Source: Octopus sinensis (lineage: Eukaryota). From it: DNA of 64,000 nt. The notes beneath the pieces were generated by a model, which saw only the letters and a program-made list of their open reading frames with translations, had not been told where the DNA came from and did not search any database. The number at the start of each line of letters is the position of its first letter. Position 1 is the first letter of the stretch. Below are positions 27,786 through 63,859 of this stretch, in pieces. The stretch spans positions 85,002,001-85,066,000 of the forward strand of contig NC_043003.1 of the NCBI RefSeq assembly GCF_006345805.1, given 5' to 3'. A program made the translations under genes and the position numbers.

Positions 27786-27821
27786 ATTTTGGGTTTTCAA
27801 AGCTTGCAGCAGCACTAGTCC
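27786..27821 (-). CDS. Micro-exon (36 nt) of mucin-like micro-exon gene: (G)TSAAASFENPK
   Basis: catgtatctgcattttccag|ggactagtgctgctgcaagctttgaaaacccaaaat|gtaagt; phase 1/1; acceptor context resembles the array micro-exons. Confidence 0.65.
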
Positions 27822-28704
27822 CTGGAAAATGCAGATACATGTTATGTTCAAACTATGAAACGCTATTTAATAAGACATATTACAAATATATATTTCTGTT
27901 TTGTCTCATAATGTTTCAGATTATATATCATACGGTAAAATAATTAATTATAATATGTGGCAAATATACTCAAATAAGAGCCATGAACAAAAACCCCGTA
28001 AATGTCCAGTCAATATTTCTAAAATGCAATATGTTACCATGAGGCCATGTACAATACGGATGATATTTAGTTTATCATATATCTAGGCGAAACACATAGA
28101 GTTAAAACAGACATGAAAATTGAGAAAGTATTGCTCGTTTCATAATTTTTCGACCTTAAACTATACGAAAGAAATGACACACTGGTTCACCGTAAACGTA
28201 ACTACCGTGTCAACTCATGCCATTATCATATGATGAATAATTCCTCAAAATATATGACAATCATATTCAAGGAGGAGACAGCATGAGAACGATAGAAATT
28301 TCTGATATCTCGCAATCGATCTGCATAACATATGATGAATATTAAGACGTCCATTCGATACACAAAATATATTTAACTTGTAGTATAAATTCAATTCATC
28401 GATAGAAAGCATGTAACTTAACACAGCTGAAGACTGTGCGTATAATGTTCCTATCATAATGTTTTGTATGACTGGATTGTAAGAATGACACTTCACACTG
28501 TTCATTCATAAACACATTTCACCAAGTCCAGACATCAGCAAAAACTGTCACTAACGGCTGATGCATCCATCTTCATAAGTGATTTTGGAGGTATACCTAA
28601 CTAATTCTCTTAAATTGTATTTTTGTAGTTTCAACGGAAACGTTTCGAGAAAAGCAACCAAAACTATTCTTCTAAATATGATTGTAAAATCCGTTTGATA
28701 ATTC

Positions 28705-28905
28705 TTCCTACTATATACACAAGCTCTGAAATTTCGGGGTTAGGGGCTAATCGATTACATCGGCCCCAGTGCGTAACTGGTACTTATTTCATCGATCCCG
28801 AAATGGATGAAATGTAATGTCGACCTTGGCGGTATTAGAGCTCAGGACGTAAGAAACACCGCTAAATATTTTCCCTGGCGTTCTAACGATTCTGCCAGCC
28901 GCCGC
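28705..28905 (-). mobile_element. SINE (family of 18339-18567), diverged
   Basis: cacaagctctgaaatt…cagtgcgtaactggtacttatttcatcgatcccgaaatggatgaaa…ctaacgattctgccagc. Confidence 0.85.
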
Positions 28906-30190
28906 TTAAAATTCGCTTAATAATAATATTTATGTCTATATAAAAACATCATTACCATAATCTGCTTTATAATAAATAGTATAATTGATATTAGATGTTT
29001 TATAGTTTGAAATAGATTTTTTCACAATCAAGTAAATATATACTACATTTTTAGACATCTATATTAATATTAAAGACCTTATGTTCAGCTGTTAAAAAAT
29101 TCATTCCACCAACTAAATCCTTTCTAATATAGTTACAAGGCCTGAAATCACTTACTTTATAGAGTTCAAATGATAAGATATATAGATCAGAGATTTTGTG
29201 GTTTAAAGTAGTAGAAAGGTCTGGAGCCCCACAAAATCCCTGATCTGTAGAACTTATCCATTCAATAGGTCCCCATGTACGGAAAATAGTTGTATAGAAT
29301 ATTGGATGAGACCACAGGTTAACTGCAAGTTTAGGAATATAGTATATGGCTTACGATATACTGAAGGACGGTGCAGAAACAAGACAACTACTTACATTGA
29401 AGAGACAGCATGTAGTACAGATGAGCGGGAGCTCAAAGAAGAGAAAAGCTCATCAGTGCTCTATCAAAATGCTCAAGCAGACCATAGAGGTTCGGTTAAT
29501 AACATAGAGGTTAAGGTCTATTATCATTATTGGCTTTCTATTCCATTCGTTATACTATCTACTTCCAAAACTGAGACAGTATATCCATGTCAATAATAAA
29601 TATTTATTTGAGGCAATGTTTGTGATGCATGTCATTTTCTATACCTCGAAGTATTCTCAAAGTTCAATCACTGGTTTACGATAATTATACATCAATGTTC
29701 TGACCAATGCAACATGTAACATTCTTTAAAGTAACTTTCAGACATGTATCAATATATAGCAATATACATCAAAACATATTGGTTGACAGCATTTCATATT
29801 TACATTTTTAAACATAAATAGTTTCGTATTTTTATAATAGTTCGTATTGAAACTATGAATTGCTTCAAATATGGGCACAGACACAGCAATTTTGTGGGAT
29901 ACCTGTTCAATCATTTACATGTAACCAAATAGTTGAGTACGACTTTATTTTACCGCCTGCGACAGGAGGTAATGCAATGATAATCTCAGCAGCATTTCAA
30001 CGCATACCGAAGGGAACCAAATGACGAGGAATCTTATACCTCTTAGGAATCTTATACGAGGAATCTTATACCTCTTAGGAATCTTATACATTTTAAAGAT
30101 TCTGCCTCAGGAAATTATGAATAAAAACACGAATATAATAATTACAAAATTGTTTGAGTATTAACGTAATTATATATAAGCATCCGTTAC

Positions 30191-30220
30191 CTTTTTCAGT
30201 TGTAGTAGGATTGGTTGGGC
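30191..30220 (-). CDS. Micro-exon (30 nt): (G)PTNPTTTEK
   Basis: tatgtattttatatatttctag|gcccaaccaatcctactacaactgaaaaag|gtaacg; phase 1/1; same position in its diverged unit as the core exons. Confidence 0.72.
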
Positions 30221-32193
30221 CTAGAAATATATAAAATACATATTATTATACAACGAAAATCTGATTACAAGGTCATTTTCCATAACAATACTCAAAATAT
30301 ATAACAGACTGGAATTGTAGGCCCGTCTCTTGCAATTTCGATCAATTGGATCTTGTATAGAAGTGTACGGCTGCAGCGAAATTCATCTTTGGCCTTTCTT
30401 CTATCGAAGGCATTTTAACAAAAATGCTTCCGTAAAGACGGTGAAAATATTGTCAATTTCCCCAAACAGGGACACAATTCAATTTTAAAACAATAACCAA
30501 AGCCCCTTCTCCGAAAGGGGGAGGGTTACGATTTACAATTATTTAACAAATGCAACACAACAACGTTTCCCTGACGAGGAACCAACAAACGTGATTACAA
30601 TAGTCAAACAGTAATAATAATAACAAAAAACCTTTTTTAATGTATCCCCATTTATGTGAAACCACTTATTCAAGTTCAAGTCATTGATGCAATTTCATAC
30701 GAATTGCTAATACACACCCACATAATAAGGTTGAAAAATTGAATATTAATTTGATTAATATGAATTGAAAACCAGTGGTGTAGCATATAAGACCACAGCG
30801 GATCTTCTTCTAGCAAAAAGGATGACCAGTATTAATTGCTCATCCCTTTTATATAAATACTTTCACGTTAATTGTTGCACACTTGCAAAGAGAAATGAGG
30901 AGAAAGTGTAGTGGTAATGGTAGGAGTGAAGCACTTGAAATGAAAGAGGGAAATCGTAAAATATTTACTTTTCTCGAATTGTTGCTTAATTGGGGGTGAA
31001 AATGAAAAAACTTTACATGCCACGACCCGATGGAATCTACTTGTAAAAATGATAGGTAAATTCCAATTGAAGAAATTCTATATTGTAGAATTGTATAAAA
31101 AACGAACGGTTTGGGAGGCAGAGAAAATCTGCCTTTTATCATAAGAGATTATAGTAAGAGTTCCTGATTCAATATATCATTCACAAACTGGATCAGATTT
31201 CTTCAAAATCTTTCCGGAGCATTCTATATTTCACGTCGTTCATATGAACGTAAATACTTTATCATAAAAATTTCAATCCATCGTCAACATGAAAATTTCT
31301 CCATCTTACACAATTTCATTTAAAGTTTTGATTAATTATCATAAATCTATTATCATTATTGGCTTACAACAAATTATTTTATAATATTTACAAAATTTCA
31401 GAATATAAATATTTTCGTATTTTAATAATAGTTCGTAATGGACTTATGAAGTGCTTCAAATATGAGCAGAGGTCGTGCAATTTTGTCGGAGACAAATTTT
31501 AATGGATTACATTACATATGCTTTTATCAGATATTTCTAGATATTCGTTACCATTTTCTGTGCTGTTTATCATACAAAAGTTATTAATAATCCCACATTA
31601 GAGCACCCAGATATAAAGAATGGTTTGATTCATAGCGATCATGTTCTCACTGAATGATACATTACTTCAACTGTTTCATATTCCTCCAAGACGAGCAAAT
31701 CTATAACTATTTCTTTTAGATTATGAAACTATATACTAAAACTATGTTTGCTAACTGTAATTTATAAACACTTAAGTTTCAATACTCTTTCAAAATGTGC
31801 GACGATATGCACAATCTACACGCATATGCGTGCAACTTTCTAATTACTTAAAATTCCTAATTTCTAACATTGTGATATTCATTAATATCACATCTCTTGA
31901 AAATGATATCATTGAGGATTACGGTAAGAGCTCTTGTCAAAATACATCTTTCAAAAACTCGATCAGATTACATCACTCACAATGTTCCTGGAAATTTTTA
32001 TATTTCATGTAATTCATATAATCACAGCATTTCAACGCATACCGAAGGGAACCAAATGACGAGCTGCTTAGGAATCTTATGCCTATTAAACATTCTGTCA
32101 TGTTTTTACCTCAGGAAATTATGAATAAAAAGATGAATATTTCAATTTAAAATTATTTGAGTGTTAACGTAATTATATATAAGAATCCCTTAC

Positions 32194-32223
32194 CTGTTAC
32201 ACTTGCTGAAGGATTGATTGTAG
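32194..32223 (-). pseudogene. Micro-exon (30 nt, (A)TINPSASVT) with mutated acceptor (TAC instead of TAG); in-frame cryptic acceptor would give a 12-nt exon at 32194-32205
   Basis: tatgtattttatatatttgtac|ctacaatcaatccttcag^caagtgtaacag|gtaagg. The donor is intact; the canonical AG is lost; a ccttcag lies 18 nt downstream. Confidence 0.55.
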
Positions 32224-35200
32224 GTACAAATATATAAAATACATATTATTATACAAAGAATATCTGATGACAATATCATTTTCCATAATAGATATTATGG
32301 ATACACAACATATCTGTTTTATGTTTCCTCTAATAATAACTTCAATGGCATGCACACCGAATATATTATTAGCATTTAATATACAATAAATATTGCTATT
32401 TTTGTTAATTATATATTTCGGATTATATGAAAGACACGACATCCAGTTTTAGCGTGAATTTATCAAAGTTATTTACCTTACTACAAGGTAGATCGGTATA
32501 AGGATATACCAGTACCACTAACTGACGGTTTACGCTATGCAGGATACTCATTGCATGACTTTATCAGATATATATCGGGATTCATTGCCATCTTCTTTGC
32601 TATTCATCATACAAAAGATGTCTTAATAAACGAAGATTATAGCACTGAGATGTAAAGCATGCTATTGGGATGCACAGTTTTGATGTTGTCACAGAAGGTT
32701 ATGATTTGTTCAACTATTTCATATTCTCCAAACTGATGTATAACTAACTATATCCTTTAAATTATAAAGCAATATAGTAAAACTAGGTTTTCTAAATGTA
32801 ATTTTAAAAACACGTAAGTTTCAATACTATTTTTAAATTCGTAACAATATCTAAACTTACATGCGTGTAATTTTCTAACTGCTTAAAATTCATGCGTTGA
32901 AACATTACAATTTTCATTATAATCTCCTCTCTTGAAAAATATTTTATTGGTGATTACGGTAAGAGTTTTGATTCAATATCGTTCATAAACGGGATTAGAT
33001 TACATTACAATTTTCATTATAATCTCCTCTCTTGAAAAATATTTTATTGGTGATTACGGTAAGAGTTTTGATTCAATATATCGTTCATAAACGGGATCAG
33101 ATTTCTTCAAAGACTTTCCGGAACATTCTATATTTTACGCTATTCATATGAACGTAAATACTTTATCATCAAAATTTCAATCAATCGTTCACCTGAAACT
33201 TTTTCTTTCTTACACAATTTCATTTCAAGTTTTGATAAATTATCATAAATCTATTTTCATTATTGGCTTTCTATTCCATTCATTATAATAACCACTTCCG
33301 AAACTGAGACATCATATCCAGGTCAGTAATAAATATTTCTTAGAGACAATGTCGAAATACATAATCTTCTGTTCCACTTAGATTTTCCAAAGTTAAAACA
33401 CTGATTTACAATAACTTATACTACAGTGTTTAACCAAAGCAAAGAGTAACAGTCTTTAAAGTATGTTACAAATATGTATCAATATATAGCGAACTACAAC
33501 AATACATTTTATAATATTTACAAAATATCAGAACATAAATATTTTCGTATTTTAATAATAGTTCGTAATGGACACATGAAGTGTTTCAAATATGAGCAGA
33601 GGTCGAGCTATTTTGTCGGAGACAAATTAAATCGATTACATTACATATGTTTTTATCAGATATTTCTAGATATTCATTTCCATTTTCTGTGCTATTTATC
33701 ATACAAAAGTTATTAATAATCCAACATTAGAGCACCCAGATATAAAGAATGGTTTGATTCATAGCGATCATGTTGTCACTGAATGATACATTATTTCAAC
33801 TGTTTCATATTCCTCCAAGCCAAGCATAACTATATCTATTTCTTTTACATTATGAAACTATATACTAAAACTATGTTTGCTAACTGTAATTTATAAACAC
33901 TTAAGTTTCAATACTCTTTCAAAATGTGCGACGATATCTACAATCTACACGTATATGCGTGCAACTTTCTAATTACTTAAAATTCATAATTTCTAACATT
34001 GTGATATTCATTAATATCACATCTCTTGAAAATGATATCATTGAGGATTATGGTAAGAGCTCTTGTCAAAATACATCTTTCAAAAACTCGATCAGATTAC
34101 ATCACTCACAATGTTCCTGGAAATTTTTATATACAGAATTACAATGTAATGCTTTTATCAGATATTTCTAGATATTCATTTCCATATTGTCTGCTATTTA
34201 TCATACAAAAGTTATTAATAATCCAACATTAGAGCACCCAGAGATAAAGAATGGTCTGATTCATAGCGTGCACGTTGTCACTGATTGATACAATACTTCA
34301 ACTGTTTCATTTTCGTTCAAGCGAAGTATAACTATAACTATTTCTTTTACATTATGAAACTATATACTAAATCTATGTTTGCTAACTGTTATTTATAAAC
34401 ACTTAAATTTTAATACAATTTCAAAATGTGCGAAGATATGCACATCTACACGCATGTGCGTGCAACTTTCTAATTACTTAATATTCATACTTTCTAACAT
34501 TGTAATTTTCATTAATTTCACATCACCTAAAAATGATATCATTGATGATTACGGTAAGAGCTATCTATAAAATATATCTTTCACAAACTCGATCAGATTT
34601 CATCAATCAAAATGTTTCTGGAAATTTCTATATTTCATGTCATTCATATAACCCTAAATACTGCATCATTTTCTGAATCCTTTTTACATCCTACACATTT
34701 CAGTTCCTGCTCGGATTAATTGACTAAACTCTATTATTATTTCTGTCATTATCTTCCGTTTATTATGCTAACCACATTCGAAACTACGACATCATTTCCA
34801 TGTCAGCAGCAAATATTTAATAGAGGTAATATTTGTAATGCATGTCATCTTTTGTTCCATAATGTTTTACCAAAGTTCAAGCATTCTTACACAATAATTT
34901 ATACTTCAGTGTTTGACCAATGCAACAGGTAAAGTAAATTACAGATATGTATCAATATACAGCAACATACATCAATACTTATTGTTTCACTTAATTTTAT
35001 GATAGTTACAACGTTTCAAATCATAAGTATATTCGTATCTTTATAATAGTTCGTAACGAAAATATGAAATGCTTCAAATATGGGCAGAGGTCGTGCAATT
35101 TTGTGGGAGATCAATTCAATCTTTTACGTTAGGCCAAATTGTTGAGCATGACCATAGTATTCTGCCTGGCACAAGAGCTAATTCATTGATAAACTTGCCG

Positions 35201-35369
35201 GCATTTCAACGCATACCGAAAAGAGACAGATGATGCTCAACTCAGCATTTTGGTGACACGTTAAATATTCTGTCACTTGCTTACCTCAAGAATCTATCAT
35301 TAAGGCGATGAATAATTTAATTGTAAAATTCATTGAAAATTAATTTATTTATATATGAGAATCACTTAC

Positions 35370-35390
35370 CTGTAGTGTTGGTGCCAGGGA
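35370..35390 (-). CDS. Micro-exon (21 nt): (V)PGTNTT
   Basis: tatgtattttaaatatttccag|tccctggcaccaacactacag|gtaagt; phase 1/1; NTT sequon. Confidence 0.8.
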
Positions 35391-37125
35391 CTGGAAATAT
35401 TTAAAATACATATTATTATACAAACAAATCTAATTGCAAATTCATATTCCGTAATAAATATTTGGGATATACTATATATCTCTTTATGATTACTCTAATA
35501 ATTTCTGCAATCGCTTGCTATAGTTTATTTACAAACAACTTTACATAATATAATTGACATGGACGACTATGTATTAAGATGAAAAGATTAGTGCTTTCCA
35601 ATGAAAATCGTTTAATGCATTAGCACTACCAAAAGCAATTGAAATGCAATGAAATAACTATGATAAGTCTATTTACCTCACCTTAAATATCGAAGAAAGG
35701 AACACGGCATATAATATACGCATTTCATATCAAATACATATTATTCGTTTTGTTAATTACATATTTCGAATAATGAGAAAAACACGACTTCCACATTTTG
35801 CAGATTGTTATCTCAGTTATTTACTTCAAGACCATGGTGGATCGACATTGCAATATACAGTAACAGTACCATGCAGTTTAATTTATACAGAATTACAATG
35901 TAATGCTTTTATCAGATATTTCTAGATATTCATTTCCATATTGTCTGCTATTTATCATAAAAAAGTTATTAATAATCCAACATTAGAGCACCCAGAGATA
36001 AAGAATGGTCTGATTCATAGCGTGCACGTTGTCACTGATTGATACAATACTTCAACTGTTTCATTTTCGTTCAAGCGAAGTATAACTATAACTATTTCTT
36101 TTACATTATGAAACTATATACTAAATCTATGTTTGCTAACTGTAATTTATAAACACTTAAATTTTAATACAATTTCAAAATGTGCGAAGATATGCACAAT
36201 CTACACGCATGTGCGTGCAACTTTCTAATTACTTAATATTCATACTTTCTAACATTGTAATTTTCATTAATTTCACATCACCTAAAAATGATATCATTGA
36301 TGATTACGGTAAGAGCTATCTATAAAATATATCTTTCACAAACTCGATCAGATTTCATCACTCAAAATGTTTCTGGAAATTTCTATATTTCATGTCATTC
36401 ATATAACCCTAAATACTGCATCATTTTCTGAATCCTTTTTACATCCTACACATTTTCAGTTCCTGCTCGGATTAATTGACTAAACTCTATTATTATTTCT
36501 GTCATTATCTTCCGTTTATTATGCTAACCACATTCGAAACTACGACATCATTTCCATGTCAGCAGCAAATATTTAATAGAGGTAATATTTGTAATGCATG
36601 TCATCTTTTGTTCCATAATGTTTTACCAAAGTTCAAGCATTCTTACACAATAATTTATACTTCAGTGTTTGACCAATGCAACAGGTAAAGTAAATTACAG
36701 ATATGTATCAATATACAGCAACATACATCAATACTTATTGTTTCACTTAATTTTATGATAGTTACAACGTTTCAAATCATAAGTATATTCGTATCTTTAT
36801 AATAGTTCGTAACGAAAATATGAAATGCTTCAAATATGGGCAGAGGTCGTGCAATTTTGTGGGAGATCAATTCAATCTTTTACGTTAGGCCAAATTGTTG
36901 AGCATGACCATAGTGTTCTGCCTGGCACAAGAGCTAATTCATTGATAAACTTGCCGGCATTTCAACGCATACCGAAAAGAGACAGATGATGCTCCACTCA
37001 GCTTTTTGGTGACACGTTAAATATTCTGTCAGTTGCTTACCTCAAGAATCTATCAATAAGGCGATGAATAATTTAATTGTAAAATTCATTGAAAATTAAT
37101 TTATTTATATATGAGAATCACTTAC

Positions 37126-37146
37126 CTGTAGTGTTGGTGCCAGGGA
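37126..37146 (-). CDS. Micro-exon (21 nt): (V)PGTNTT
   Basis: Identical to the 35370 exon; atttccag|...|gtaagt. Confidence 0.8.
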
Positions 37147-38521
37147 CTGGAAATATTTAAAATACATATTATTATACAAACAAATCTAATTGCAAATTCA
37201 TATTCCGTAATAAATATTTGGAATATACTATATATCTCTTTATGATTACTCTAATAATTTCTGCAATCGCTTGCTATAGTTTATTTACAAACAACTTTAC
37301 ATAATATAATTGACATGGACGACTATGTATTAAGATGAAAAGATATGTGCGTTTAATGCATTATCACTACCAACACCAATTGAAATGCACTGACATAACT
37401 ATGTTCTGATTCATAGCGTGCACGTTGTCACTGATTGATACAATACTTCAACTGTTTCATTTTCGTTCAAGCGAAGTATAACTATAACTATTTCTTTTAC
37501 ATTATGAAACTATATACTAAATCTATGTTTGCTAACTGTAATTTATAAACACTTAAATTTTAATACAATTTCAAAATGTGCGAAGATATGCACAATCTAC
37601 ACGCATGTGCGTGCAACTTTCTAATTACTTAATATTCATACTTTCTAACATTGTAATTTTCATTAATTTCACATCACCTAAAAATGATATCATTGATGAT
37701 TACGGTAAGAGCTATCTATAAAATATATCTTTCACAAACTCGATCAGATTTCATCACTCAAAATGTTTCTGGAAATTTCTATATTTCATGTCATTCATAT
37801 AACCCTAAATACTGCATCATTTTCTGAATCCTTTTTACATCCTACACATTTTCAGTTCCTGCTCGGATTAATTGACTAAACTCTATTATTATTTCTGTCA
37901 TTATCTTCCGTTTATTATGCTAACCACATTCGAAACTACGACATCATTTCCATGTCAGCAGCAAATATTTAATAGAGGTAATATTTGTAATGCATGTCAT
38001 CTTTTGTTCCATAATGTTTTACCAAAGTTCAAACATTCTTACACAATAATTTATACTTCAGTGTTTGACCAATGCAACAGGTAAAGTAAATTACAGATAT
38101 GTATCAATATACAGCAACATACATCAATACTTATTGTTTCACATAATTTTATGATATTTACAACGTTTCAAAACATAAATATATTCGTATCTTTATAATA
38201 GTTCGTAACGAAAATATGAAATGCTTCAAATATGGGCAGAGCTCGTGCAATTTTGTGGGAGATCAATTCAATCTTTTACGTTAGGCCAAATTGTTGAGCG
38301 TGACTATATTTTTCCGCCTGGCACGTGAGCTAATGCATTGATAAACTTGCCGGCATTTCAACGCATACCGAAAAGAGACAGATGATGCTCCACTCAGCTT
38401 TTTGGTGACACGTTAAATATTCTGTCAGTTGCTTACCTCAAGAATCTATCAATAAAGCGATGAATATTTTAATTGTAAAATTCATTGAAAATTAACTTAT
38501 TTATATATGAGAATCACTTAC

Positions 38522-38542
38522 CTGTAGTCTTTGCGGTAGTGG
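38522..38542 (-). CDS. Micro-exon (21 nt): (A)TTAKTT
   Basis: tatgtattttaaatattttcag|ccactaccgcaaagactacag|gtaagt; phase 1/1. Confidence 0.8.
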
Positions 38543-40277
38543 CTGAAAATATTTAAAATACATATTATTATACAAACGAATCTAATTGCAAATTCATATT
38601 CCGTAATAAATATTTGGAATATACTATATATCTTTTTATGATTACTCTTATAATTTCTGCAATCTCTTGCTATCGTTTATTTACAAACTAATTTACATAA
38701 TATAATTGACATGGAGGACTATATATTAAGATGAAAAGATATGTGCTTTCCAATAAAAATCGTTTAATGCATTAGCACTACCAAAAGCAATTGAAATGCA
38801 CTGACATAACTATGATAAGTCTATTTACCTCACCGTAAACATCGAGGAAAGGAACACGGCATATAATATACGCATTTCATATCAAATACATATTATTCGT
38901 TTTGTTAATTACATATTTCGAATAATGAGAAAAACACGACTTCCACATTTTGCAGATTGTTATCTCAGTTATTTACTTCAAGACCATGGTGGATCGACAT
39001 TGCAATATACAGTAACAGTACCATGCAGTTTAATTTATACAGAATTACAATGTAATGCTTTTATCAGATATTTCTAGATATTCATTTCCATATTGTCTGC
39101 TATTTATCATGAAAAAGTTATTAATAATCCAACATTAGAGCACCCAGAGATAAAGAATGTTCTGATTCATAGCGTGCACGTTGTCACTGATTGATACAAT
39201 ACTTCAACTGTTTCATTTTCGTTCAAGCGAAGTATAACTATAACTATTTCTTTTACATTATGAAACTATATACTAAATCTATGTTTGCTAACTGTAATTT
39301 ATAAACACTTAAATTTTAATACAATTTCAAAATGTGCGAAGATATGCACAATCTACACGCATGTGCGTGCAACTTTCTAATTACTTAATATTCATACTTT
39401 CTAACATTGTAATTTTCATTAATTTCACATCACCTAAAAATGATATCATTGATGATTACGGTAAGAGCTATCTATAAAATATATCTTTCACAAACTCGAT
39501 CAGATTTCATCACTCAAAATGTTTCTGGAAATTTCTATATTTCATGTCATTCATATAACCCTAAATACTGCATCATTTTCTGAATCCTTTTTACATCCTA
39601 CACATTTTCAGTTCCTGCTCGGATTAATTGACTAAACTCTATTATTATTTCTGTCATTATCTTCCGTTTATTATGCTAACCACATTCGAAACTACGACAT
39701 CATTTCCATGTCAGCAGCAAATATTTAATAGAGGTAATATTTGTAATGCATGTCATCTTTTGTTCCATAATGTTTTACCAAAGTTCAAACATTCTTACAC
39801 AATAATTTATACTTCAGTGTTTGACCAATGCAACAGGTAAAGTAAATTACAGATATGTATCAATATACAGCAACATACATCAATACTTATTGTTTCACAT
39901 AATTTTATGATATTTACAACGTTTCAAAACATAAATATATTCGTATCTTTATAATAGTTCGTAACGAAAATATGAAATGCTTCAAATATGGGCAGAGCTC
40001 GTGCAATTTTGTGGGAGATCAATTCAATCTTTTACGTTAGGCCAAATTGTTGAGCGTGACTATATTTTTCCGCCTGGCACGTGAGCTAATGCATTGATAA
40101 ACTTGCCGGCATTTCAACGCATACCGAAAAGAGACAGATGATGCTCCACTCAGCTTTTTGGTGACACGTTAAATATTCTGTCAGTTGCTTACCTCAAGAA
40201 TCTATCAATAAAGCGATGAATATTTTAATTGTAAAATTCATTGAAAATTAACTTATTTATATATGAGAATCACTTAC

Positions 40278-40298
40278 CTGTAGTCTTTGCGGTAGTGG
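40278..40298 (-). CDS. Micro-exon (21 nt): (A)TTAKTT
   Basis: Identical to the 38522 exon; splice sites intact. Confidence 0.8.
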
Positions 40299-42033
40299 CT
40301 GAAAATATTTAAAATACATATTATTATACAAACGAATCTAATTGCAAATTCATATTCCGTAATAAATATTTGGAATATACTATATATCTTTTTATGATTA
40401 CTCTTATAATTTCTGCAATCTCTTGCTATCGTTTATTTACAAACTAATTTACATAATATAATTGACATGGAGGACTATATATTAAGATGAAAAGATATGT
40501 GCTTTCCAATGAAAATCGTTTAATGCATTATCACTACCAACACCAATTGAAATGCACTGACATAACTATGATAAGTCTATTTACCTCACCGTAAACATCG
40601 AGGAAAGGAACACGGCATATAATATACGCATTTCATATCAAATACATATTATTCGTTTTGTTAATTACATATTTCGAATAATGAGAAAAACACGACTTCC
40701 ACATTTTGCAGATTGTTATCTCAGTTATTTACTTCAAGACCATGGTGGATCGACATTGCAATATACAGTAACAGTACCATGCAGTTTAATTTATACAGAA
40801 TTACAATGTAATGCTTTTATCAGATATTTCTAGATATTCATTTCCATATTGTCTGCTATTTATCATAAAAAAGTTATTAATAATCCAACATTAGAGCACC
40901 CAGAGATAAAGAATGTTCTGATTCATAGCGTGCACGTTGTCACTGATTGATACAATACTTCAACTGTTTCATTTTCGTTCAAGCGAAGTATAACTATAAC
41001 TATTTCTTTTACATTATGAAACTATATACTAAATCTATGTTTGCTAACTGTAATTTATAAACACTTAAATTTTAATACAATTTCAAAATGTGCGAAGATA
41101 TGCACAATCTACACGCATGTGCGTGCAACTTTCTAATTACTTAATATTCATACTTTCTAACATTGTAATTTTCATTAATTTCACATCACCTAAAAATGAT
41201 ATCATTGATGATTACGGTAAGAGCTATCTATAAAATATATCTTTCACAAACTCGATCAGATTTCATCACTCAAAATGTTTCTGGAAATTTCTATATTTCA
41301 TGTCATTCATATAACCCTAAATACTGCATCATTTTCTGAATCCTTTTTACATCCTACACATTTTCAGTTCCTGCTCGGATTAATTGACTAAACTCTATTA
41401 TTATTTCTGTCATTATCTTCCGTTTATTATGCTAACCACATTCGAAACTACGACATCATTTCCATGTCAGCAGCAAATATTTAATAGAGGTAATATTTGT
41501 AATGCATGTCATCTTTTGTTCCATAATGTTTTACCAAAGTTCAAACATTCTTACACAATAATTTATACTTCAGTGTTTGACCAATGCAACAGGTAAAGTA
41601 AATTACAGATATGTATCAATATACAGCAACATACATCAATACTTATTGTTTCACATAATTTTATGATATTTACAACGTTTCAAAACATAAATATATTCGT
41701 ATCTTTATAATAGTTCGTAACGAAAATATGAAATGCTTCAAATATGGGCAGAGCTCGTGCAATTTTGTGGGAGATCAATTCAATCTTTTACGTTAGGCCA
41801 AATTGTTGAGCGTGACTATATTTTTCCGCCTGGCACGTGAGCTAATGCATTGATAAACTTGCCGGCATTTCAACGCATACCGAAAAGAGACAGATGATGC
41901 TCCACTCAGCTTTTTGGTGACACGTTAAATATTCTGTCAGTTGCTTACCTCAAGAATCTATCAATAAAGCGATGAATATTTTAATTGTAAAATTCATTGA
42001 AAATTAACTTATTTATATATGAGAATCACTTAC

Positions 42034-42054
42034 CTGTAGTCTTTGCGGTAGTGG
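42034..42054 (-). CDS. Micro-exon (21 nt): (A)TTAKTT
   Basis: Identical to the 38522 exon; splice sites intact. Confidence 0.8.
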
Positions 42055-43789: not shown

Positions 43790-43810
43790 CTGTAGTCTTT
43801 GCGGTAGTGG
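43790..43810 (-). CDS. Micro-exon (21 nt): (A)TTAKTT
   Basis: Identical to the 38522 exon; splice sites intact. Confidence 0.8.
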
Positions 43811-45539: not shown

Positions 45540-45560
45540 CTGTAGTGTTGGTGACAGGGA
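45540..45560 (-). CDS. Micro-exon (21 nt): (V)PVTNTT
   Basis: atttccag|tccctgtcaccaacactacag|gtaagt; one nonsynonymous change from VPGTNTT. Confidence 0.8.
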
Positions 45561-47295: not shown

Positions 47296-47316
47296 CTGTA
47301 GTCTTTGCGGTAGTGG
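47296..47316 (-). CDS. Micro-exon (21 nt): (A)TTAKTT
   Basis: attttcag|ccactaccgcaaagactacag|gtaagt. Confidence 0.8.
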
Positions 47317-49038: not shown

Positions 49039-49059
49039 CTGTAGTGTTGGTGCCAGGGA
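49039..49059 (-). CDS. Micro-exon (21 nt): (V)PGTNTT
   Basis: atttccag|tccctggcaccaacactacag|gtaagt. Confidence 0.8.
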
Positions 49060-50792: not shown

Positions 50793-50822
50793 CTCTTGCT
50801 CTTCCAGAAGTTGGGCCAGTGT
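50793..50822 (-). CDS. Micro-exon (30 nt): (D)TGPTSGRAR
   Basis: ggtattttaaatatttccag|acactggcccaacttctggaagagcaagag|gtaaat; phase 1/1. Confidence 0.72.
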
Positions 50823-52007
50823 CTGGAAATATTTAAAATACCTTTTATTACGTAAACATATCTGATCGCAAATTGATATTCGTAATATAAAGTTGGAATA
50901 TACTATATATCTTTTTATGTTTGCTCTAATAATATCTTCAATCGCTTGCTATCCCTTATTTCCGTACTACTTTATATATTATAATCGACATGGACGATAT
51001 ATATTAAGATGAAAAGATATGTGGTTTCCAATGAAAATCGTTTAATGCATAAGCACTACCAACACCAAACTGGGTGAGATTTCTTCACTTAAATCCATAC
51101 TTTGTAACTTTGTAATTTTCATTATTATCTCCTCTCTTGAAAATAAATTCATTGATGATTACAATAAGAGTTCCTGATGAAATATATCTTTCACATACTG
51201 GATGAGATTACTTCACTTACAATCTCCTAGAAAACTCTATATTTCATGCCATTCGCATAACCGTAAATACTTTATCATCAGCATTTCAATCAATTATTCA
51301 CCTGAGTATTATTACTCTTTACACAATTTCAGTTCTCGCTCTGCTTAATTATCTAAATCTATTATTATTATTATTGGCTTTCTATTCTATTCGTTACACC
51401 AACCAATTCCGAAACTGAGAAATCATGAGGATTCTCATGTCAGTAATAAATATTCATTAGAGACAATATTTGTGATATATGTCATCTGTTCCACGTAGTT
51501 TTGCCAAAGCTCAAAAAATTGTTTTACAATAATTTATATTTCAGTGTTTTCACCAAATCAACACGTAACACTTTTTGTAGTTAATTTCATATCTGTATCA
51601 ATATATAGCAACATACATCATTACTTATTGTTTGACTCCATTTTATAATATTTACAACATTTCAAATCATAAATATTTTCGTATTTTTTATAATAGGTCT
51701 TAATGAAAATATGAATTGCTTCAAATATGTGCACAGGTCCAACAATTTTGTGGAAGATACTGTTCAGTCGTTTACATTAGCCCATATATTTAAGTGTAAC
51801 TTAATTTTACCCTCTGGGACATGAGTTATTGCAATGATAATCTCGGCGGCATACAGAAAAGTGACAGATATCAAACTGCTCAGTATTTTGTTCGACGCGT
51901 TCAATATTCCGTCATGTGGTTACCTCAAGAATTTATCAATTAAACGATGAAGATTTTAATTATAAATTTCTTTGATTATTAAGATATTTATATAAGAACA
52001 TATTTAT

Positions 52008-52036
52008 CTTTTGCAGAGGTTTTATTAGCAGCAATT
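52008..52036 (-). pseudogene. Dead micro-exon (29 nt, donor GT>AT); remnant of x-IAANKTSAK
   Basis: tatgtattttatatatttctag|aattgctgctaataaaacctctgcaaaag|ataaat. The position is homologous to the other exons, but the donor is lost and the length is not a multiple of 3. Confidence 0.6.
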
Positions 52037-53842
52037 CTAGAAATATATAAAATACATATTATCATAGAAATAAAATCTGATAGCAAAGACATATTTGATA
52101 ACGTATATTATAATATACAATATATCATTTTATGTTTACTATAATAATATCTTCAATGGCATGCTATCATTTCATTCAATACGAATTTATATAATATCAT
52201 TGTCATGGAAGGCTATCTCTCAAGATGAGAAAATATGGAATTCCCAATGAAAATCGTTATAATGAACGAGTGATTTTATAAGCAATATTTCCATGGCAAT
52301 CTCTTAGGTATGATAATGTTATTTACGTTATCTTAATTGTGTAGTTTCCTATGAAAATTGTTCTTATGTGCGATTGATTCTATAAGCACTAAGGAATGTA
52401 TATGATTGTTATTTTATATAGAAGAAATTTTGTTAGTTTTTTTAATTATTTATTTCTGTTTATATGAAAGTTAGTTTTTTAATTACATATTTCGCATTAT
52501 AAGAAAACACGACATCCGGTTTTATCATGAAGCTTTCTCAGTAATTTACCATATAAAACAAGACAGATCGGTATTGGGACATACCAGTAACACTATCATC
52601 CAGTTTACTTTATACAGAATTATCATTTAATGACTTTATCAGATATATCTCGGAATTCATTGCCAGTTTCATTACTATTCATCATATAATAGTTATTAAT
52701 AATGCAATATTAGAGCTCTGACATATAACAATACTGTGAGGCATAGCTTTAATCTTGTCACAGAATGGTATGATTTGTTCAACTGCTCCATATTCTCCAA
52801 AACCATGCATAACTATAATTATTTGCTTTTCAATTATAAACCAATATAATAAAACTAGGTTTGCTAAAAGCAATCTATAAACACAAGTTTCAATATTATT
52901 TTAATATTTGCGACAATGTGCAAAATCTACACTTACGTGCGTGAAATTTTGTAACTACTTAAATTCATACTTTGTAACTTTGTAATTTTTATTATTATTT
53001 ACTCTCTTGAAAATAATTTCATTGATGATTACAATAAGAGTTCTTGATGAAATAAATCTTTCACAAACTGGATGAGATTACTTCACTTACAATCTTTCTG
53101 GAAAACTCTATATTTCATGCCATTCGCATGACCGTAAATGCTTTATCATCAGCATTTCAAACAATCATTCACCTGAATCTTACTTCTTCCACAATTTTCA
53201 GTTCTCCCTCTGCTTAATTACCGTAAATATATTATCATTATCGGGTTTCTGTTCTATTTATTATACTAACCACTTCTGAAACTAAGACAGTATATCCATG
53301 CCAGTTATAAATATTTTTTGATGGCTATGTTTGTGATGCATGTAATCTTCTATAGCTCGAAGTTCAATCATTGATTTACAATAAATTATACATCAATATT
53401 TTCCCTAAAGTAACATATAACATTCTTTAAAATAACTTTCAGATATGTATCAATATATAGCAGCATAAATCAATATTTATTGCCTGACAACATTTCATAA
53501 TATTTACATTTTAAACCATAAATAATTTCGTATTTTATAATAGTTCGTAATGAAACTATAAATTGCTGCAAATATGGTCACAGCAATTTTGTGGGGGATC
53601 TACTCCATCGTTTACATGAACTCAGATATTTTAACGTCTACGACAGGAGGTAATGCAATGATAATCTCGGCAGCATTTCAACGCATACCGAAGGGGGAGA
53701 GATGACGACCTGCTTAAGAATTTGATAGACCTGTTAAAGATTCTGCCAGGTTGTTAGCCCTAAGAACTATGAATAAAACGATGAATATTATAATTATAAG
53801 AATCTTTGAATATTAACATAATTATATATAAGCATTATTTAC

Positions 53843-53872
53843 CGTTTGGACCTCCATTAGCACTGGTTACGC
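53843..53872 (-). CDS. Micro-exon (30 nt): (C)VTSANGGPN, completes the signal peptide
   Basis: tatattttatatatttctag|gcgtaaccagtgctaatggaggtccaaacg|gtaaat; phase 1/1. Joined to exon 1 it gives ...AIVSCVTS/A, with a plausible signal-peptidase site. Confidence 0.72.
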
Positions 53873-55099
53873 CTAGAAATATATAAAATATATATTATAG
53901 AAAGTATATCGGATTGCAAAGTCATTTTTCATAATAGATATTATGAATATACAATATATCCTTTTTATGTTTGCTCTAATAACGTCTTCAATGGCATGCT
54001 TTCCTTTCATCTCGAGATGAGAAAATATCTGGTTTCCAATGAAAATCTTTTTAATGAATTAGTGATCCTATCAGCACTATTTCAATGGCAAGGACATGGG
54101 TTTTTTAAGGTTATTTACCTTATCTTAAACATCGCAAAAAATACACACGCAATATATTATAGTTATTTAATATAGAATAAATATTATTAGATTTGTAATT
54201 ACTTAATTTGGATTATATGGAAGACATGACATCAATACCTATTGGTTGGCAATATTTCATAATATTTACATTTTAAAACAAATATTTTCGTATTAGCATA
54301 ATAGTTCGTAATGAAATTGAGAATTGCTTTAAATATCACATCCCACCAGACTCAAGACACAAGAAATATTTTCTCAAATTGCTGCAGGATTTTCTTTCTT
54401 TCTTTTTTTTTAAATATCATTGAGTGAATGACTGCTTCTCACACATTGTGCGACGCTAGATTCATGAGAAATATTTAAACCTTTCACCAATATCCAATGA
54501 GTGTGAAAACGCACCTTGCTGCCATGCTCCTGTACTAGAAATAGAAATGCTTGCATTCGTAAACGCCATTCTTAATACCAAAGGATAGACAGTGTTTACA
54601 GAGTGCAGTTTTTCTTCCTTTCAGAGACATGATGTCAATGTAAATAATAGATATTATTAAAGACAACGTGTGTAATGTACGTAATTTACTGTTCCACGTA
54701 GTTTTCCCTAATTTCAAATATTGACTTATAATAAATTACACTTCAGTGCTCTAACCAAAACGCCAGTTAACTTTCTTTTAAAGTAATTTTCAGCTAGGTA
54801 TTAATATATAGCAACATACATTGATACTAATTGTTTGGTATTGCTTAAAATAATTCCGTACAAGGCCAGGAAGAATGAGAGGTAGCGACGTGAGACAGAG
54901 TACAGAGAAATAGAGCTCGTTTGAATGGATAATTTTAATGTTGTGAGAGAACGAACATTTTTTTCATTTTCCTGCAAGTTCTTTCTTCACAGATGCCACT
55001 GTGCGAATATCCGGTTCCAAATAGTACATTATGTCTTGTAGGAATCATTAGAATATTTTGAGATTTTATATTAGCAAGAGTATGCTATCTTAATCCTCA

Positions 55100-58000
55100 T
55101 AATGTTTTAAGGAACACACCTTGCTACTGCGTTTCTGTACAAAGTTTTTTCCATGGATTCATTCCCTTCCTAACACCATCGGGTATACTAATTCATTTTA
55201 TCACAATTTTTCTTGGCACCAGTGTAATAGTTTGCCTCGTCTTAGTCATGCCTCAAAAGTCCTCGCATCCCTGCATGGTCTTTGCTCGAACTTTGAACAT
55301 TTCGCAGCTGATACAGATTACACTTTTTACCTGTCACAAGCGCTTTGGAGTTTGTCTCACCTTCTGCAACACGATTCTGGCGTGTGTACTGGGTGCTTTC
55401 TCCCGTTGTGTGTGTTTGCTGAAATTGCTGAGCGGAGTGACAATCATGTCATGAAAAACTGCAAAAACTATGGAAAGAAGCCACAAAGCGGGAAGAAGAA
55501 AAATCCATAAAAATGTGGGAAAAACAACAAGAGTGAGTCACTAACTATGAAGAAAACCATGGAGACAAATGCATAATGAAAACGAAACCACAACAACACG
55601 AAGAAATCGAAAACAAACTTAGACACTAACCCCAGAAGAACCGAACTGAGGTAACGAACCTCTAATTACCCAAGAACATACGCGGAAATGACCCCTGTCT
55701 CACCCCAAGTACAGACCAGAAACCTATATTCTTCAATGCATAACACTGCAAATAACCAACACATGAAATATAGAAGACGACAATCAACCCATAAATCAAC
55801 ACACCATAGATGGATAAATAAAAAGAAAAAGGGCATGATAGGCAAATATCATACAGACAACCACCAACCGAAAATAACATGTACCCTAGATGGATGAATA
55901 CATAGGAAGAGAGACAAATAAAATACAGACAGCACGGGTACTATAATAGGAATAATAATCATCATGATAACTCAAGCAACCCACGATTTACGACCAAAAA
56001 TCCCATATATCCTGAATGGCGAAAAGAGCATGGAGGAAGGGAAGAAAACAAAACTTATAACCAGCGGAATTCATATAAAAGATATGAACCATCCTCCCAC
56101 TTACATGGAAACCAGAACGCCGAGATCAGAAAACGGAGACATAGTGACAAAATTCCATTTTTAGGGAGGAAATACTAAAATAACACACCGGACCCGATAA
56201 TACACAAAATTTAAATGAACACACACACAACATATAGACCCGAAGATCATAAATTTGTCAAACGAGAATGAGATGATCCTCCTATTAAAATGTTTCAAGT
56301 TTACCCCGACACCTACACCTAATCTCATAGAACTGGAATCTGATACTGAACACTTCAACCGCCACCTCCGACTTATAGAATTCTTGAACAACAAAGATTT
56401 AAATGATGAATAATAGTCAGAAATAAATCCCACTTCATCCGCTACAAGGGAAAGGACAAATAGTTAGACGTATATATAGGCACGATTTAAAAATTTCCCC
56501 TAAATACCCACAGATGCAAACAAAACCTTCGTGAAGAGGAAAAGGAAGCCTTACAAACACTGAAGAATGACATCTCAGTCATCCTAAAAGAAAAAAACAG
56601 TAATGAATAAAATCAGGAGACTAATCAATGAATTCCAAGATTCCTTCACGGACAAGGAGGAAGATTATATATGCAGCTCTGTAATCAAAGAGAGTAATTT
56701 CTACGGATTACCCAAAATCCACAAAAGCTCCGAAATACAAAGTGCCATAAATAAGAAGTACCAATACGTAAAAATACTAAGGCCTTCTGACCTCAAACTA
56801 AGACCAATAGTTGCTGGAAATCAAGCACCAACACAACAACTAAGTCATTCTTTGGATATACTCCTAAAACCTTTGTAGCTTTTAATACCCAATTATGTAC
56901 ATGATGGCATAGATTTCATCCAACACATCCCTTCCACTGTCGCAGAAGATACTATACTCACAAGTTTTGATGGCACCAATTTCTATATTAATATACCTCA
57001 CACTTTAGGCCTAGAAGCAATCAAATACCGGGTAGAGGAACACAGAGAACGGATAAATGAACGTTTCAACACTGACTTCATCACCAAGGCCACACACCTA
57101 GTACTAGAGGAAAATACCTTTAGATTCGACAATAAAACATATGGACAAAAAAGGGCACGGCCATGGGTACGCTGTTTACGATCTCATATGCAAACTTAGT
57201 AATGGGATACTTGGAAGTAAAACTTTATGAGGAAGTAGAAAAAACTTTTGATCAGGAGTACAAGAAATATATTAAAAAGTGGAAACGCTTCCTTGATGAT
57301 TGCTTCATCTTCTGGGACAAATCGAATGAAGATCTAAATATATTTAACAATATACTGAACACACTTGACCCATTCATCTAATTCACGACAGAATCCATTT
57401 GCAATGAACTACCATTCCAGGATATCCATATAAAAATACAGAACTCCACAGTCACAACAAACATATTTTATAAAACACCGACACCAACCAATATTTAAAT
57501 TTCTACTCTTGCCATAGACGCATCTGTGCTATAATGACTGACCCCAAAATACGTGAAATCCGACTCAACGAAATCAAAGGCTTCCCCACAACACAGAAAT
57601 ACCCCTTAGGATTAATTAATGAGGGGATTAAAAAAGCGATGGAACTGAATATCACATCTACGGATACCTAAGGAAAAAGTTAATGAAAACACGATTCCGT
57701 TCATTAACACACACAGTCCTGGAATGACCATCTTCCACAAACTTACCTGTACTCCTACAAAGACCCAAAATGAAAAATCTGATTGAAAAAAAACACCTTA
57801 CGGAATAGCAGATGCCAACCAAAAAATCTTAAAAAACACCTCACAAGGGCAGAATTCAAATCAGAGAATGAATCTGAATTCTTAGTAAAAGAATGTGGAG
57901 TTAGAAGATGTAGAACACGCAACATCAACAACTTCAAATACTTGGAAAGGGGTTCTTACATAAAATTCAAAAGCGGATCCCTTTTCAAGATGCAGATATG

Positions 58001-58449: not shown

Positions 58450-58720
58450 GAATACAAAAATGGGGCATCCAGACAGTTAGATGATACAAAAAGAGACAAG
58501 AAAAAACAAGGAGTCATTCCTCAGTCGAGTTCCAGATTATTTTTGCAGTTTCGTCGAGTATAACCAGCCGAAACTGAAAAGATAATCTGGAACTCGACTG
58601 ACGAAAGAAAACTCCGAATGAACCGTTTTTGTTTTTCTCTTGTCCCTTTTTGTATCATCTAACTGTCTGAATGTCTTGTTGTCTCCGGTTGCGTTCTTGT
58701 CCCATTTTTTTGTATTTTTT
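58448..58720. repeat. Imperfect fold-back inverted repeat downstream of the Penelope-like element
   Basis: …cagacagttagatgatacaaaaag…ttcctcagtcgagttccagattat…cagtttcg is mirrored by cgaaactg…ataatctggaactcgactga…ctttttgtatcatctaactgtctg; flanked by (TA)n. Confidence 0.8.
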
Positions 58721-59463: not shown

Positions 59464-59484
59464 TATATAGGTATATATATATAT

Positions 59485-62000: not shown

Positions 62001-62276
62001 TGCTTGTGTATAGTTTGACCCCAAAGTCTCAGGCAGAGAAGCACAGCATCTTTTAATGGACTAAGAAGAAAGATATTGAAAGGGTTCCAATCGGCAACGA
62101 AAGAACTTTGACAAACAAAAACAAAACCAATGTATCAATGTTTAACCAAATCAATCAAACAATCGATTAGTTTGTTGGATATGCAACCAATTGACTAATA
62201 ATAAATTGAACTAGTGGAATTGAACCAGTGAGTGTGTTAATAATATTAGCATAATGACTCTTCCTAGATACAACAA

Positions 62277-62470
62277 TATATACACACATACACTCACACA
62301 CACACACAAGCACACACACATACAAGCACACACACACAAGCACACACACACACAAGCACACACACACACAAGCACACACACACAAGCACACACACACACA
62401 AGCACACACACACACACACTCTCTCTTTCTCTCTCTCTCTCACACACACATATATACGCACACATACATT
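62277..62470. repeat. (CA)n/(CACAAGCA) and (CT)n microsatellite; further (TA)n and (TATG)n tracts at 18100-18163, 59395-59487, 63650-63745
   Basis: Direct inspection. Confidence 0.93.
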
Positions 62471-62479
62471 CAAACATAT

Positions 62480-63385
62480 ATATCAAAACCTGGGAGAAGG
62501 TAGGCGTGGCTGGAACAAGGGACACTATGGAGGGTGTAATGGCGCTTCGGCATAGCGAAGCAGTTTCTTAACAAGGAGAATGCCAGAAGGTTGTTGTTCA
62601 GTCCTCTCCTCAACATCACATCACACTTTGAAGGCTATGCGTTTGCAATCCAGGAACAGGATATTGCCACAAAGTATCTGGTGAACATGAGAGATAGTGA
62701 CGCTCTTGTAATCCCAAGGAGCAACTGTATGTGTAAGCTATGTCATGTTTCTGTGGAAGACATCACGCATGTGATTAGCAGCTGTCCTAAAATGTCATCA
62801 CGATACTACCTCCCTATGCAGCACGATGTTGTTGCTAAAACAACTTACAATGCCATCCGCAAAAAAGAATGTCCTGAAATAAACTTAGAAAATCCCTCTG
62901 TTATGGAATACATTCACAAACAACAACTTAAGGAAAACTGGTGGAATATTCCCATCAAAACTTCTGTCAAATGTAAACATTAACAGGTCAGATATTGTTG
63001 TTTGGGACAAAGGGGCAAAGGTATGTACCGTCATAGAGGTCAGCTGCCCTGCAGATATAAATATCTCTCTGAAAATCAAAAGAAAAGAAGATATATATGG
63101 ACATATATATCATCTAGGTCTATATTCATAATCATACCAATAATAATTGGAGCACTAGGAGAATCTGAATAAACAGGGATTTTCAGAAAGAGAAATCGAC
63201 CGGCTAATTCGTACATTACAAGTGCAACTTGTGACTGGAAGAGTAAAAATATGCAAGACTTTTCTCAAGTTCCAAATGTGAATTTATCTGTGTTAACTAC
63301 ATCCCAAAGATGGAGTCATGTATCTTTGTTGGAAACCGGCTACCTCCCCAATGGAAGATTTATGATAATTCAGAAATAGAAGAGA
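62480..63385 (+). mobile_element. 5'-truncated R4-like (RLE-type) LINE fragment
   Basis: EGYAFAIQEQDIATK; zinc finger CKLCHVSVEDITHVISSC...HDVVA; RLE RSDIVVWDK...VIEVSCPAD; IPIIIGALG; KICKTFLKFQM* at 63281. Confidence 0.85.
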
Positions 63386-63813
63386 CAGACATACATACAT
63401 GCATACGTACATACATTCTCAATATGGAAAATACTTAGCACTCAAATGATTTGAATTTACACTCCGAAATTTTTATCAGGGACGGAGTCCACGAAGTAAT
63501 GGGTGGCTATGAGAGAAATTCAGGTGAGCAGATAAGGATACAATGATGTATGTATGCATGTATTTATGTATGTACGTACATATATAGATACATGTATATG
63601 CTAAACTGGTAACACGATCTCTCTTTTTCCATCTCTCTCTCTCCCTATATATATAAATATATGTATGTTATGTATGTATGTATGTATTTATGTATGTTAT
63701 GTATGTATGTATGTATGTATGTATGTATGTATGTATGTATGTATCCATATCTGTAATAGAAAGTGCTAGTTTAGTGAAATAGTAAAAAAAATAGTATATC
63801 ACACGATACTCAC

Positions 63814-63859
63814 ATGAAACTATGGCCATGACGACGATGAGAAGATATATAGTCTTCAT
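63814..63859 (-). CDS. First coding exon of the micro-exon gene: signal peptide MKTIYLLIVVMAIVS
   Basis: aaacatcATG aag act ata tat ctt ctc atc gtc gtc atg gcc ata gtt tca t|gtgagt. A basic n-region and hydrophobic h-region, a consensus donor, and phase 1 like all micro-exons. Confidence 0.7.

Follow-up and report, generated by a model that had tools for sequence, protein, structure and literature searches.

Micro-exon genes (MEGs) "appear to be restricted to platyhelminths"; all of them carry signal peptides, and their variants arise by the skipping of symmetric micro-exons (PMC4350168). Operationally, such a gene has been defined by micro-exons of under 70 nt whose length is a multiple of three, a total of at least seven exons of which at least half are micro-exons, and a run of at least four of these (Olson et al. 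2020, PMC7653826). A related design is that of the polymorphic mucins of Schistosoma mansoni (SmPoMuc), in which a 27-bp exon 2 is carried by each of up to 20 copies of a ~1-kb repeat, introns are >94% identical, and the genes are clustered and recombine (Roger et al. 2008, PMC2576457). SmPoMuc transcripts hold more repeats than the gene, through exon repetition or trans-splicing, and the sets of variants are specific to the individual (PMC2576457). Both designs are treated as peculiar to parasitic flatworms and have been read as adaptations for antigenic variation against the host (PMC4350168, PMC2576457). Here we describe a convergent gene of the SmPoMuc and MEG type outside the flatworms, a design described before only in parasitic members of that group. 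The gene lies on the minus strand of a 64,000-nt stretch of the Octopus sinensis genome (CM016865.1:85,002,001-85,066,000, plus strand, GCA_006345805.1; hereafter the window), of which positions 12333-64000 (51.7 kb) were 100% identical to CM016865.1 of that assembly. A first-pass annotation, made from the letters of the window, had supposed a cephalopod host, as proved to be the case. We hold with good confidence that the locus is a genuine protein-coding split gene, running from window 63859 to 22333 (~41.5 kb), that is one of two duplicate copies and most likely encodes a cell-surface mucin.

Self-BLAST of the window revealed a tandem unit of ~1756 bp across ~29.5-54.8 kb, with copies at 38.2-45.5 kb 99.7-100% identical and outer copies 67-75% identical. 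Self-BLAST was used instead of Tandem Repeats Finder, which with its maximum period of 500 is blind to this array. On the minus strand, every exon-bearing unit carried at a fixed site a pyrimidine-rich tract, AG, a short open segment and GTAAGT. The first-pass annotation had described these as AG-exon-GT cassettes in phase 1/1 with lengths in multiples of three, and they were found as described. It had counted 13 intact or nearly intact exons; the array proved to hold 14 cassettes, of which 13, with lengths of 21, 30 or 36 nt and always in phase 1/1, were intact and one had a broken acceptor. The exact 21-mer CCACTACCGCAAAGACTACAG occurred 5 times against 0 expected. The last five exon bases and the donor, ACAG/GTAAGT (a slash marks a junction or cleavage point throughout), were invariant among the 21-nt units, and splice sites were retained even in units of just 67-75% identity, which bears out the earlier remark that splice flanks stay recognisable in the diverged outer units. 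The damaged cassette, at 32223, contained an in-frame internal acceptor, ccttcag/CAAGTGTAACAG, that would give a 12-nt version; its acceptor may be polymorphic between the genome animal and the RNA-seq animals. A partial, exon-less unit contained a tandem duplication of a 100-bp segment (97% identity, window 32902-33103).

Together the locus comprised 15-16 coding exons, of which 13-14 were consecutive micro-exons contributing 315-345 of 426-456 coding nt (~75%). All 13 intact internal exons, being 21, 30 or 36 nt long, fell below 70 nt and were multiples of three, and the MEG-like architecture that had been claimed for the locus is thus that of a micro-exon gene in the operational sense (PMC7653826). 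The exon coordinates and the spliced peptide proposed earlier were correct: the exons joined in phase to that peptide. The extent of the gene had been underestimated. A minus-strand locus of >36 kb was right, but its end had been set at 27786, and the terminal exon at 22397-22333 had been missed. A candidate 49-nt intron after 27786, leading to ...FVLFIISLMDSLIS and a stop, was dropped once this terminal exon was found. The locus had also been called hidden and likely to be missed by gene finders, which was mistaken, as NCBI Gnomon had annotated it with another 5' end as XP_036360301.1, a model of 152 aa named 'autotransporter adhesin BpaC-like'. The coding sequence of XP_036360301.1 was rebuilt base for base from window exons, terminal exon and stop included, and the chain from 53872 to 27786 was identical to its residues 27-131, with 50822 left out and 32223 in.

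Signal exon, chain and terminal exon formed a closed open reading frame (ORF) of 141 aa, or 151 aa with the damaged cassette. By Kyte-Doolittle hydropathy, the protein had just two hydrophobic segments, one at either extreme end. Judged by rule, the N-terminus had the traits of a signal peptide (MKTIYLLIVVMAIVSCVTSA/NGG, with K at position 2, a 14-residue hydrophobic core and T/A at -3/-1); hydropathy peaked at 3.66 over residues 6-14, and the cleavage motif was VTSA/N. The core was 43% Thr and held five N-X-S/T sequons, one of them formed by the 53872/50822 junction. The C-terminus read ...GTSAAAS-FENPKYVQIP-LTSLLALLTSAILVFN: its last 16 residues had a mean Kyte-Doolittle value of 1.96, the last 20 were uncharged, and a single Asn stood alone after the hydrophobic run. 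The scheme of a glycosylphosphatidylinositol (GPI) signal is an N-terminal signal peptide, small omega-site residues, a polar spacer, and ~15-20 hydrophobic C-terminal residues without cytoplasmic charge. The octopus C-terminus fits this scheme by inspection, and its uncharged hydrophobic tail suggests that the protein is not freely secreted but GPI-anchored or bound to the membrane. The signal-peptide-like N-terminus and mucin-like core of the first-pass annotation were retained; its description of the product as secreted is probably wrong. As predicted from sequence, the product is most likely a GPI-anchored, or at least membrane-tethered, glycosylated mucin. The Pfam family PF01456 (T. cruzi mucin-like glycoprotein) aligned nearly full length, scoring 30.5 bits with the signal-exon model and 25.1 bits with XP_036360301.1, both below the gathering threshold of 34.7 bits; this resemblance is compositional and architectural, not one of membership or homology. 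The Pfam scan of the product returned sub-threshold compositional matches only, and the protein is presumably a low-complexity, disordered mucin.

A paralogue, LOC115213828 (to whose locus sequence L002 coordinates belong), was located 122 kb away on the same strand. The two loci were colinear, with 97.5-97.9% identity across unique introns and flanks, and derive from a recent segmental duplication. The paralogue shares the architecture of the window gene. A 46-nt signal exon is separated by a 9.8-kb intron from the micro-exons, which measure 30 nt (one), 21 nt (six, four of which lie 1756 bp apart), 30 nt (one) and 36 nt (one) in that order; the terminal exon matches that of the window gene. 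Its RefSeq isoforms X1-X4 (110, 103, 96 and 96 aa) differed only by the presence of VHTTSTT, VPTTKTT or APTKKTT (L002 exons 24401, 27913 and 29669): they represent frame-neutral skipping of symmetric 21-nt micro-exons. The window gene has one model only. Cassette losses differed between the copies. The 50822 cassette was intact in the window and its counterpart was deleted in the paralogue, and the ATINPSASVT cassette has been disabled independently in each, through a change of acceptor from TAG to TAC in the window and of donor from GT to CT in the paralogue (L002 ~33292-33321), where the acceptor was kept. A CUB-domain gene on the opposite strand was present downstream of both mucin copies (window ~12333-13572, plus strand; L002 49719-53133; flank 98.6% identical), and the duplication therefore copied no less than the mucin gene together with its CUB neighbour.

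The first-pass annotation had compared the locus with schistosome MEGs, and the gene is MEG-like; its nearest analogue, however, is SmPoMuc, with one micro-exon per ~1-kb genomic repeat (PMC2576457). Both encode a mucin-like protein of the secretory pathway with one micro-exon per tandem unit, which in octopus is 21 nt in 1756 bp, with nine such units in the window. Intronic parts were 96-100% identical among these nine units, compared with >94% in SmPoMuc. In both, repeat types are intermingled in one array, and the genes are clustered and recently duplicated, with recombination or conversion between members. Variants arise by splicing in SmPoMuc, and skipping isoforms are annotated for the octopus paralogue. 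The two share no sequence similarity, and the octopus gene comes from a mollusc that lives free rather than as a parasite. In SmPoMuc, exons 3-15 encode a conserved C-terminal domain, whereas the octopus gene ends with two more micro-exons and a 21-aa hydrophobic, GPI-like tail; nor are the octopus units separated by GA microsatellites. Rfam detected no ribozyme or other family in the window, and so no hammerhead ribozyme such as SmPoMuc has. Complementary intron segments have been proposed for SmPoMuc exon repetition; a search for inverted repeats within the octopus unit gave only short AT-rich matches of chance quality.

Like the MEGs of schistosomes and tapeworms, the octopus gene combines a predicted signal peptide, runs of symmetric micro-exons and long introns with apparently accelerated evolution and an orphan product (DeMarco et al. 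2010; PMC4350168; PMC7653826; PMC10526429). Skipping in MEGs yields isoforms a few residues apart, as annotated for the octopus paralogue. Unlike them, it belongs to a cephalopod and has no homology to platyhelminth MEG families. Most MEG micro-exons bear no relation to each other, and they lie outside regular tandem repeats, whereas those of the octopus are embedded in one; MEG products are mostly secreted gland proteins, whereas the octopus product has a predicted C-terminal membrane or GPI signal. Small GPI-anchored mucins, such as T. cruzi TcMUC (PF01456) and mammalian CD24 and CD52, are encoded by one or few ordinary exons. Their layout is that predicted for the octopus protein, with a signal peptide, a short core that is rich in Thr and heavily glycosylated, and a hydrophobic GPI signal at the C-terminus, but the octopus coding sequence is spread over a micro-exon array. 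In classical mucins with a variable number of tandem repeats (VNTR), such as vertebrate MUC, the whole repeat domain occupies one large exon, and recombination acts on a unit of tens of bases. These too are Thr-rich tandem-repeat glycoproteins whose repeat number can change by unequal recombination. With the repeats in a single exon, splicing cannot vary their content; the recombining unit of the octopus gene is 1.76 kb and mostly intron.

A search with the spliced peptide gave five NCBI RefSeq matches, which were without exception Octopus sinensis proteins encoded on a single 117.5-Mb chromosome. No homologue beyond the two O. sinensis genes was found in a word-indexed search of 5.8 billion proteins, made with the full peptide and then with its non-repetitive ends; 1.84 billion representative proteins scanned exhaustively with HMMER likewise yielded only these two. 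In the library searched, we found no paper on the gene, on its accessions, or on micro-exon genes in octopus, cephalopods or molluscs. The absence of any sequence relationship to flatworm MEGs indicates that the resemblance is convergent, in keeping with the independent evolution claimed earlier. The best reading is of a gene that is lineage-restricted, as far as databases show, and a convergent analogue of SmPoMuc and the MEGs.

Sequence variation within the array was greatest in the exon. When the twelve distinct 21-nt units of the two genes were compared pairwise, the difference was 0.235 in the exon, against 0.040 and 0.038 in the flanking 150 and 189 nt. Variable columns numbered 12/21 in the exon compared with 41/339 in the intron (Fisher P=3e-6), and the exon was the most diverse 21-nt window across the entire 1756-bp unit. 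Between best-matching units of the two paralogues, introns differed by 2.0-3.3% and exons by 14-29% (3-6/21; binomial P 0.02 to 5e-5). The nine exon types gave a non-synonymous difference (pN) of 0.27 and a synonymous difference (pS) of 0.17, a ratio of ~1.6. Exon differences between the paralogues nearly all changed an amino acid, and in the non-repeat exons of the mature peptide 5/96 nt differed, all non-synonymously. Exon length classes all differed by multiples of three, as did just 5/21 intron indels.

Exon type was decoupled from intron background. Units 45560 (VPVTNTT) and 43810 (ATTAKTT) differed at 7/21 exon bases compared with 0.6% of intron bases (P=2.5e-11). Eight substitutions separated them at positions -4 to +13 relative to the micro-exon; elsewhere, the 329 nt upstream and the 856 nt downstream held just one substitution and one 6-nt indel. 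The exon of units 47316 and 43810 was the same, in introns 2.3% apart. The pattern at 43790-45560 resembles conversion of an exon patch over a short tract, after which four near-identical units were amplified.

These data could also be produced by an ordinary structural mucin, in which the micro-exon layout is a historical route of expansion and skipping is splicing noise with no diversity-generating role. We regard this as a possible account, though one with clearly less than an even chance. The known set comprises just two genes and nine exon types, every exon type is Thr-rich and equally usable as a glycan carrier, and a conversion-like patch is directly seen. Old exon types lying in homogenised introns would fit a pS of 0.17 in exons and 0.04 in introns, and the high pS means that intron homogenisation by conversion may explain part of the contrast between exon and intron. 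However, if homogenisation is to spare precisely positions -4 to +13 in each unit, selection must maintain exon diversity, and the persistence of exon diversity inside homogenised introns points the same way. The predominance of amino-acid changes among exon differences between the paralogues, and the non-synonymous nature of every difference in the non-repeat mature exons, likewise argue against a purely structural role.

On the best reading, the gene probably encodes a surface mucin with a stalk that varies by duplication of units, conversion of short tracts and skipping of exons. The stalk lengthens in 7-aa steps through whole-unit duplication, the four to five youngest units being 99.7-100% identical. 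Cassettes arise and die, with splice-site losses differing between paralogues. Exon types with up to a third of their bases different sit in near-identical introns, in one case with the conversion-like patch described above. As all micro-exons are symmetric and have near-identical splice signals, any subset could be skipped without a break in frame, which is what the annotated isoforms of the paralogue display. Unit copy number probably varies between individuals via unequal recombination, and selection presumably maintains the diversity of the exons. A repertoire would then come from three mechanisms acting jointly: micro-exon skipping, unequal recombination of units, and conversion of hypervariable exon patches under diversifying selection. 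Such a repertoire might act in encounters with microbes, parasites, prey or self, such as recognition at the skin or sucker surface. That octopuses independently evolved a diversity-generating system of surface mucins matching the SmPoMuc and MEG design, with a repertoire of variants per animal or cell, is a tentative proposal that we consider doubtful at present.

The 5' end bears on whether the window copy is functional. The signal exon at 63859-63814, proposed in the first-pass annotation, proved homologous to the annotated exon 1 of LOC115213828 (L002 10001-10046; 2/46 nt differ), and the annotation of that homologue supports the start proposed. The window copy can be told apart by ATG instead of GTG as codon 11 and by GCT...GGAGGT within exon 2. 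XP_036360301.1 begins instead with three alternative 5' exons that lie within the 10-kb first intron and are all conserved in the paralogue. For a protein of such type, the signal exon appears to be a better start than Gnomon's; the NCBI model of the window copy probably has the wrong 5' end, and its name is misleading. The working principle of Gnomon provides a basis for inferring transcript support behind a model. An 8-nt exon and an AC acceptor are not expected from an ab initio predictor, and RNA-seq alignments probably underlie XP_036360301.1.

It is improbable, in our judgement, that the window copy is a decaying or mis-expressed duplicate, starting at 58.7 kb without a signal peptide, with LOC115213828 as the only functional gene. 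The NCBI model does begin at 58705 rather than at the signal exon, and one cassette has lost its AG acceptor. Against this, the signal exon, its donor and the other cassettes are intact, the ORF closes with a stop, and the window array is the larger and the most recently expanded. The same alternative 5' exons exist in the functional-looking paralogue, which has suffered cassette loss too, and the alternative N-terminus, ...MTEMSFFSVCVTSA/N, might by eye be a weak signal peptide. That there is no gene at all, only a 1.76-kb macrosatellite with fortuitous AG...GT cassettes and artefactual NCBI models on low-complexity sequence, is barely credible: several frames are open in short T/A/C-rich segments, so that a stop-free reading is weak by itself, and the name 'autotransporter adhesin BpaC-like' is plainly compositional, but one frame joins signal peptide, 13 cassettes, hydrophobic tail and stop at two loci, splice sites and multiple-of-3 lengths are maintained in diverged units, four isoforms and an 8-nt exon indicate transcript-based models, and variation is concentrated in the exon.

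Several points weigh against our reading of the locus as a variable surface-mucin gene. The divergence tests compare related, non-independent units with exons of 21 nt, and the exon pS of 0.17 is itself far above intron divergence. The four identical central units could have been miscounted in the long-read assembly. GPI anchor and glycosylation are deduced from inspection and hydropathy, and the evidence of expression is confined to the existence and form of the NCBI models. The model for the window copy starts at the alternative 5' exons, not at the signal exon, and has no classical signal peptide; it also uses an AC acceptor and omits 50822, whose sites are perfect, suggesting that real splicing may differ from either model. 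The searches described above found no orthologues in other species.

A pair of genes in a free-living cephalopod, non-homologous to those of flatworms, would make this architecture a convergent and general route to glycoproteins variable in length and sequence, and not a signature of parasitism. The octopus locus is suited to the questions of how 21-nt exons are recognised, how identical tandem splice sites are paired, and how exon diversity survives within homogenising introns. Relatives in other cephalopod genomes may lack annotation.

Table. Components of the octopus mucin gene in the window, from 5' to 3' on the minus strand, with predicted splice junctions.
Feature	Position in window	Strand	Remarks
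Exon 1, coding part (signal peptide)	63814..63859	-	ATG, MKTIYLLIVVMAIVS + 1 nt; 46 nt; donor gtgagt; phase 1
Alternative 5' coding exon of XP_036360301.1, MGQERNRRQQDIQT	58664..58705	-	no signal peptide; 3 substitutions vs paralogue
8-nt exon of XP_036360301.1, tag/GAGTACAG/gtaagt	57747..57754	-	identical in paralogue
29-nt exon of XP_036360301.1, (R)MTEMSFFSV, ttttag/gtaagg flanks	56555..56583	-	identical in paralogue
Tandem array of ~1756-bp units	29517..54836		some units partial or decayed; one micro-exon per full unit
30-nt micro-exon, (C)VTSANGGPN	53843..53872	-	phase 1/1; signal-peptide end and mature start; in XP_036360301.1
Decayed cassette	52007..52036	-	acceptor tag retained, GT donor gone; dead in both paralogues
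30-nt micro-exon DTGPTSGRAR	50793..50822	-	phase 1/1; intact cag/gtaaat; omitted by Gnomon model; paralogue homologue lost by deletion
21-nt micro-exon VPGTNTT	49039..49059	-	
21-nt micro-exon ATTAKTT	47296..47316	-	
21-nt micro-exon VPVTNTT	45540..45560	-	
21-nt micro-exon ATTAKTT	43790..43810	-	
21-nt micro-exon ATTAKTT	42034..42054	-	
21-nt micro-exon ATTAKTT	40278..40298	-	
21-nt micro-exon ATTAKTT	38522..38542	-	
21-nt micro-exon VPGTNTT	37126..37146	-	
21-nt micro-exon VPGTNTT	35370..35390	-	
30-nt cassette ATINPSASVT	32194..32223	-	donor intact, acceptor TAG to TAC; in Gnomon model nonetheless
30-nt micro-exon GPTNPTTTEK	30191..30220	-	same sequence in paralogue
36-nt micro-exon GTSAAASFENPK	27786..27821	-	contains candidate GPI omega-site region
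Terminal coding exon, (Y)VQIPLTSLLALLTSAILVFN + stop	22333..22397	-	uncharged hydrophobic C-terminal tail
Predicted junction, exon 1 to exon 2			GTTTCAT/GCGTAACCAG
Predicted junctions joining consecutive cassettes			...ACTACAG/CCACTACCGCAAAG...; ACTACAG/CCACTACCGC; ACTACAG/TCCCTGG
Predicted junction with 50822 included			CAAACG/ACACTGGCCC
Predicted junctions at 32223			full damaged cassette ACTACAG/CTACAATC; internal 12-nt version ACTACAG/CAAGTGTAACAG
Further predicted junction			CCAAAAT/ATGTGCAAATTCC

The window also contained elements other than the mucin gene. A GC-rich (~50%) retrotransposon of the type without long terminal repeats (non-LTR) was identified on the plus strand at window 1996-5432, with Exo_endo_phos, RVT_1 split over two frames, and zf-RVT. 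Upstream of it, an ORF at 524-1552 (342 aa) had no Pfam match. The last intron of the mucin gene contained an element resembling a short interspersed element (SINE) at 27232-27616, plus strand, with TATATA flanks and a tRNA-like head of the GGCCCAGTGGTTAGGG...GGTTCGATTCCC type; this head was not called by ARAGORN or Rfam, both of which gave no matches on the window. Exceptionally long microsatellites or low-complexity tracts were found at window 10852-11565, 15519-15654, 17498-17905, 25805-25968, 26223-26590 and 62282-62419, and included a ~700-bp (TATA/TATG)n tract, (TTC)35, (AAG)35, runs of (ATA)n and a 400-bp purine-rich block of GAG/GAA.

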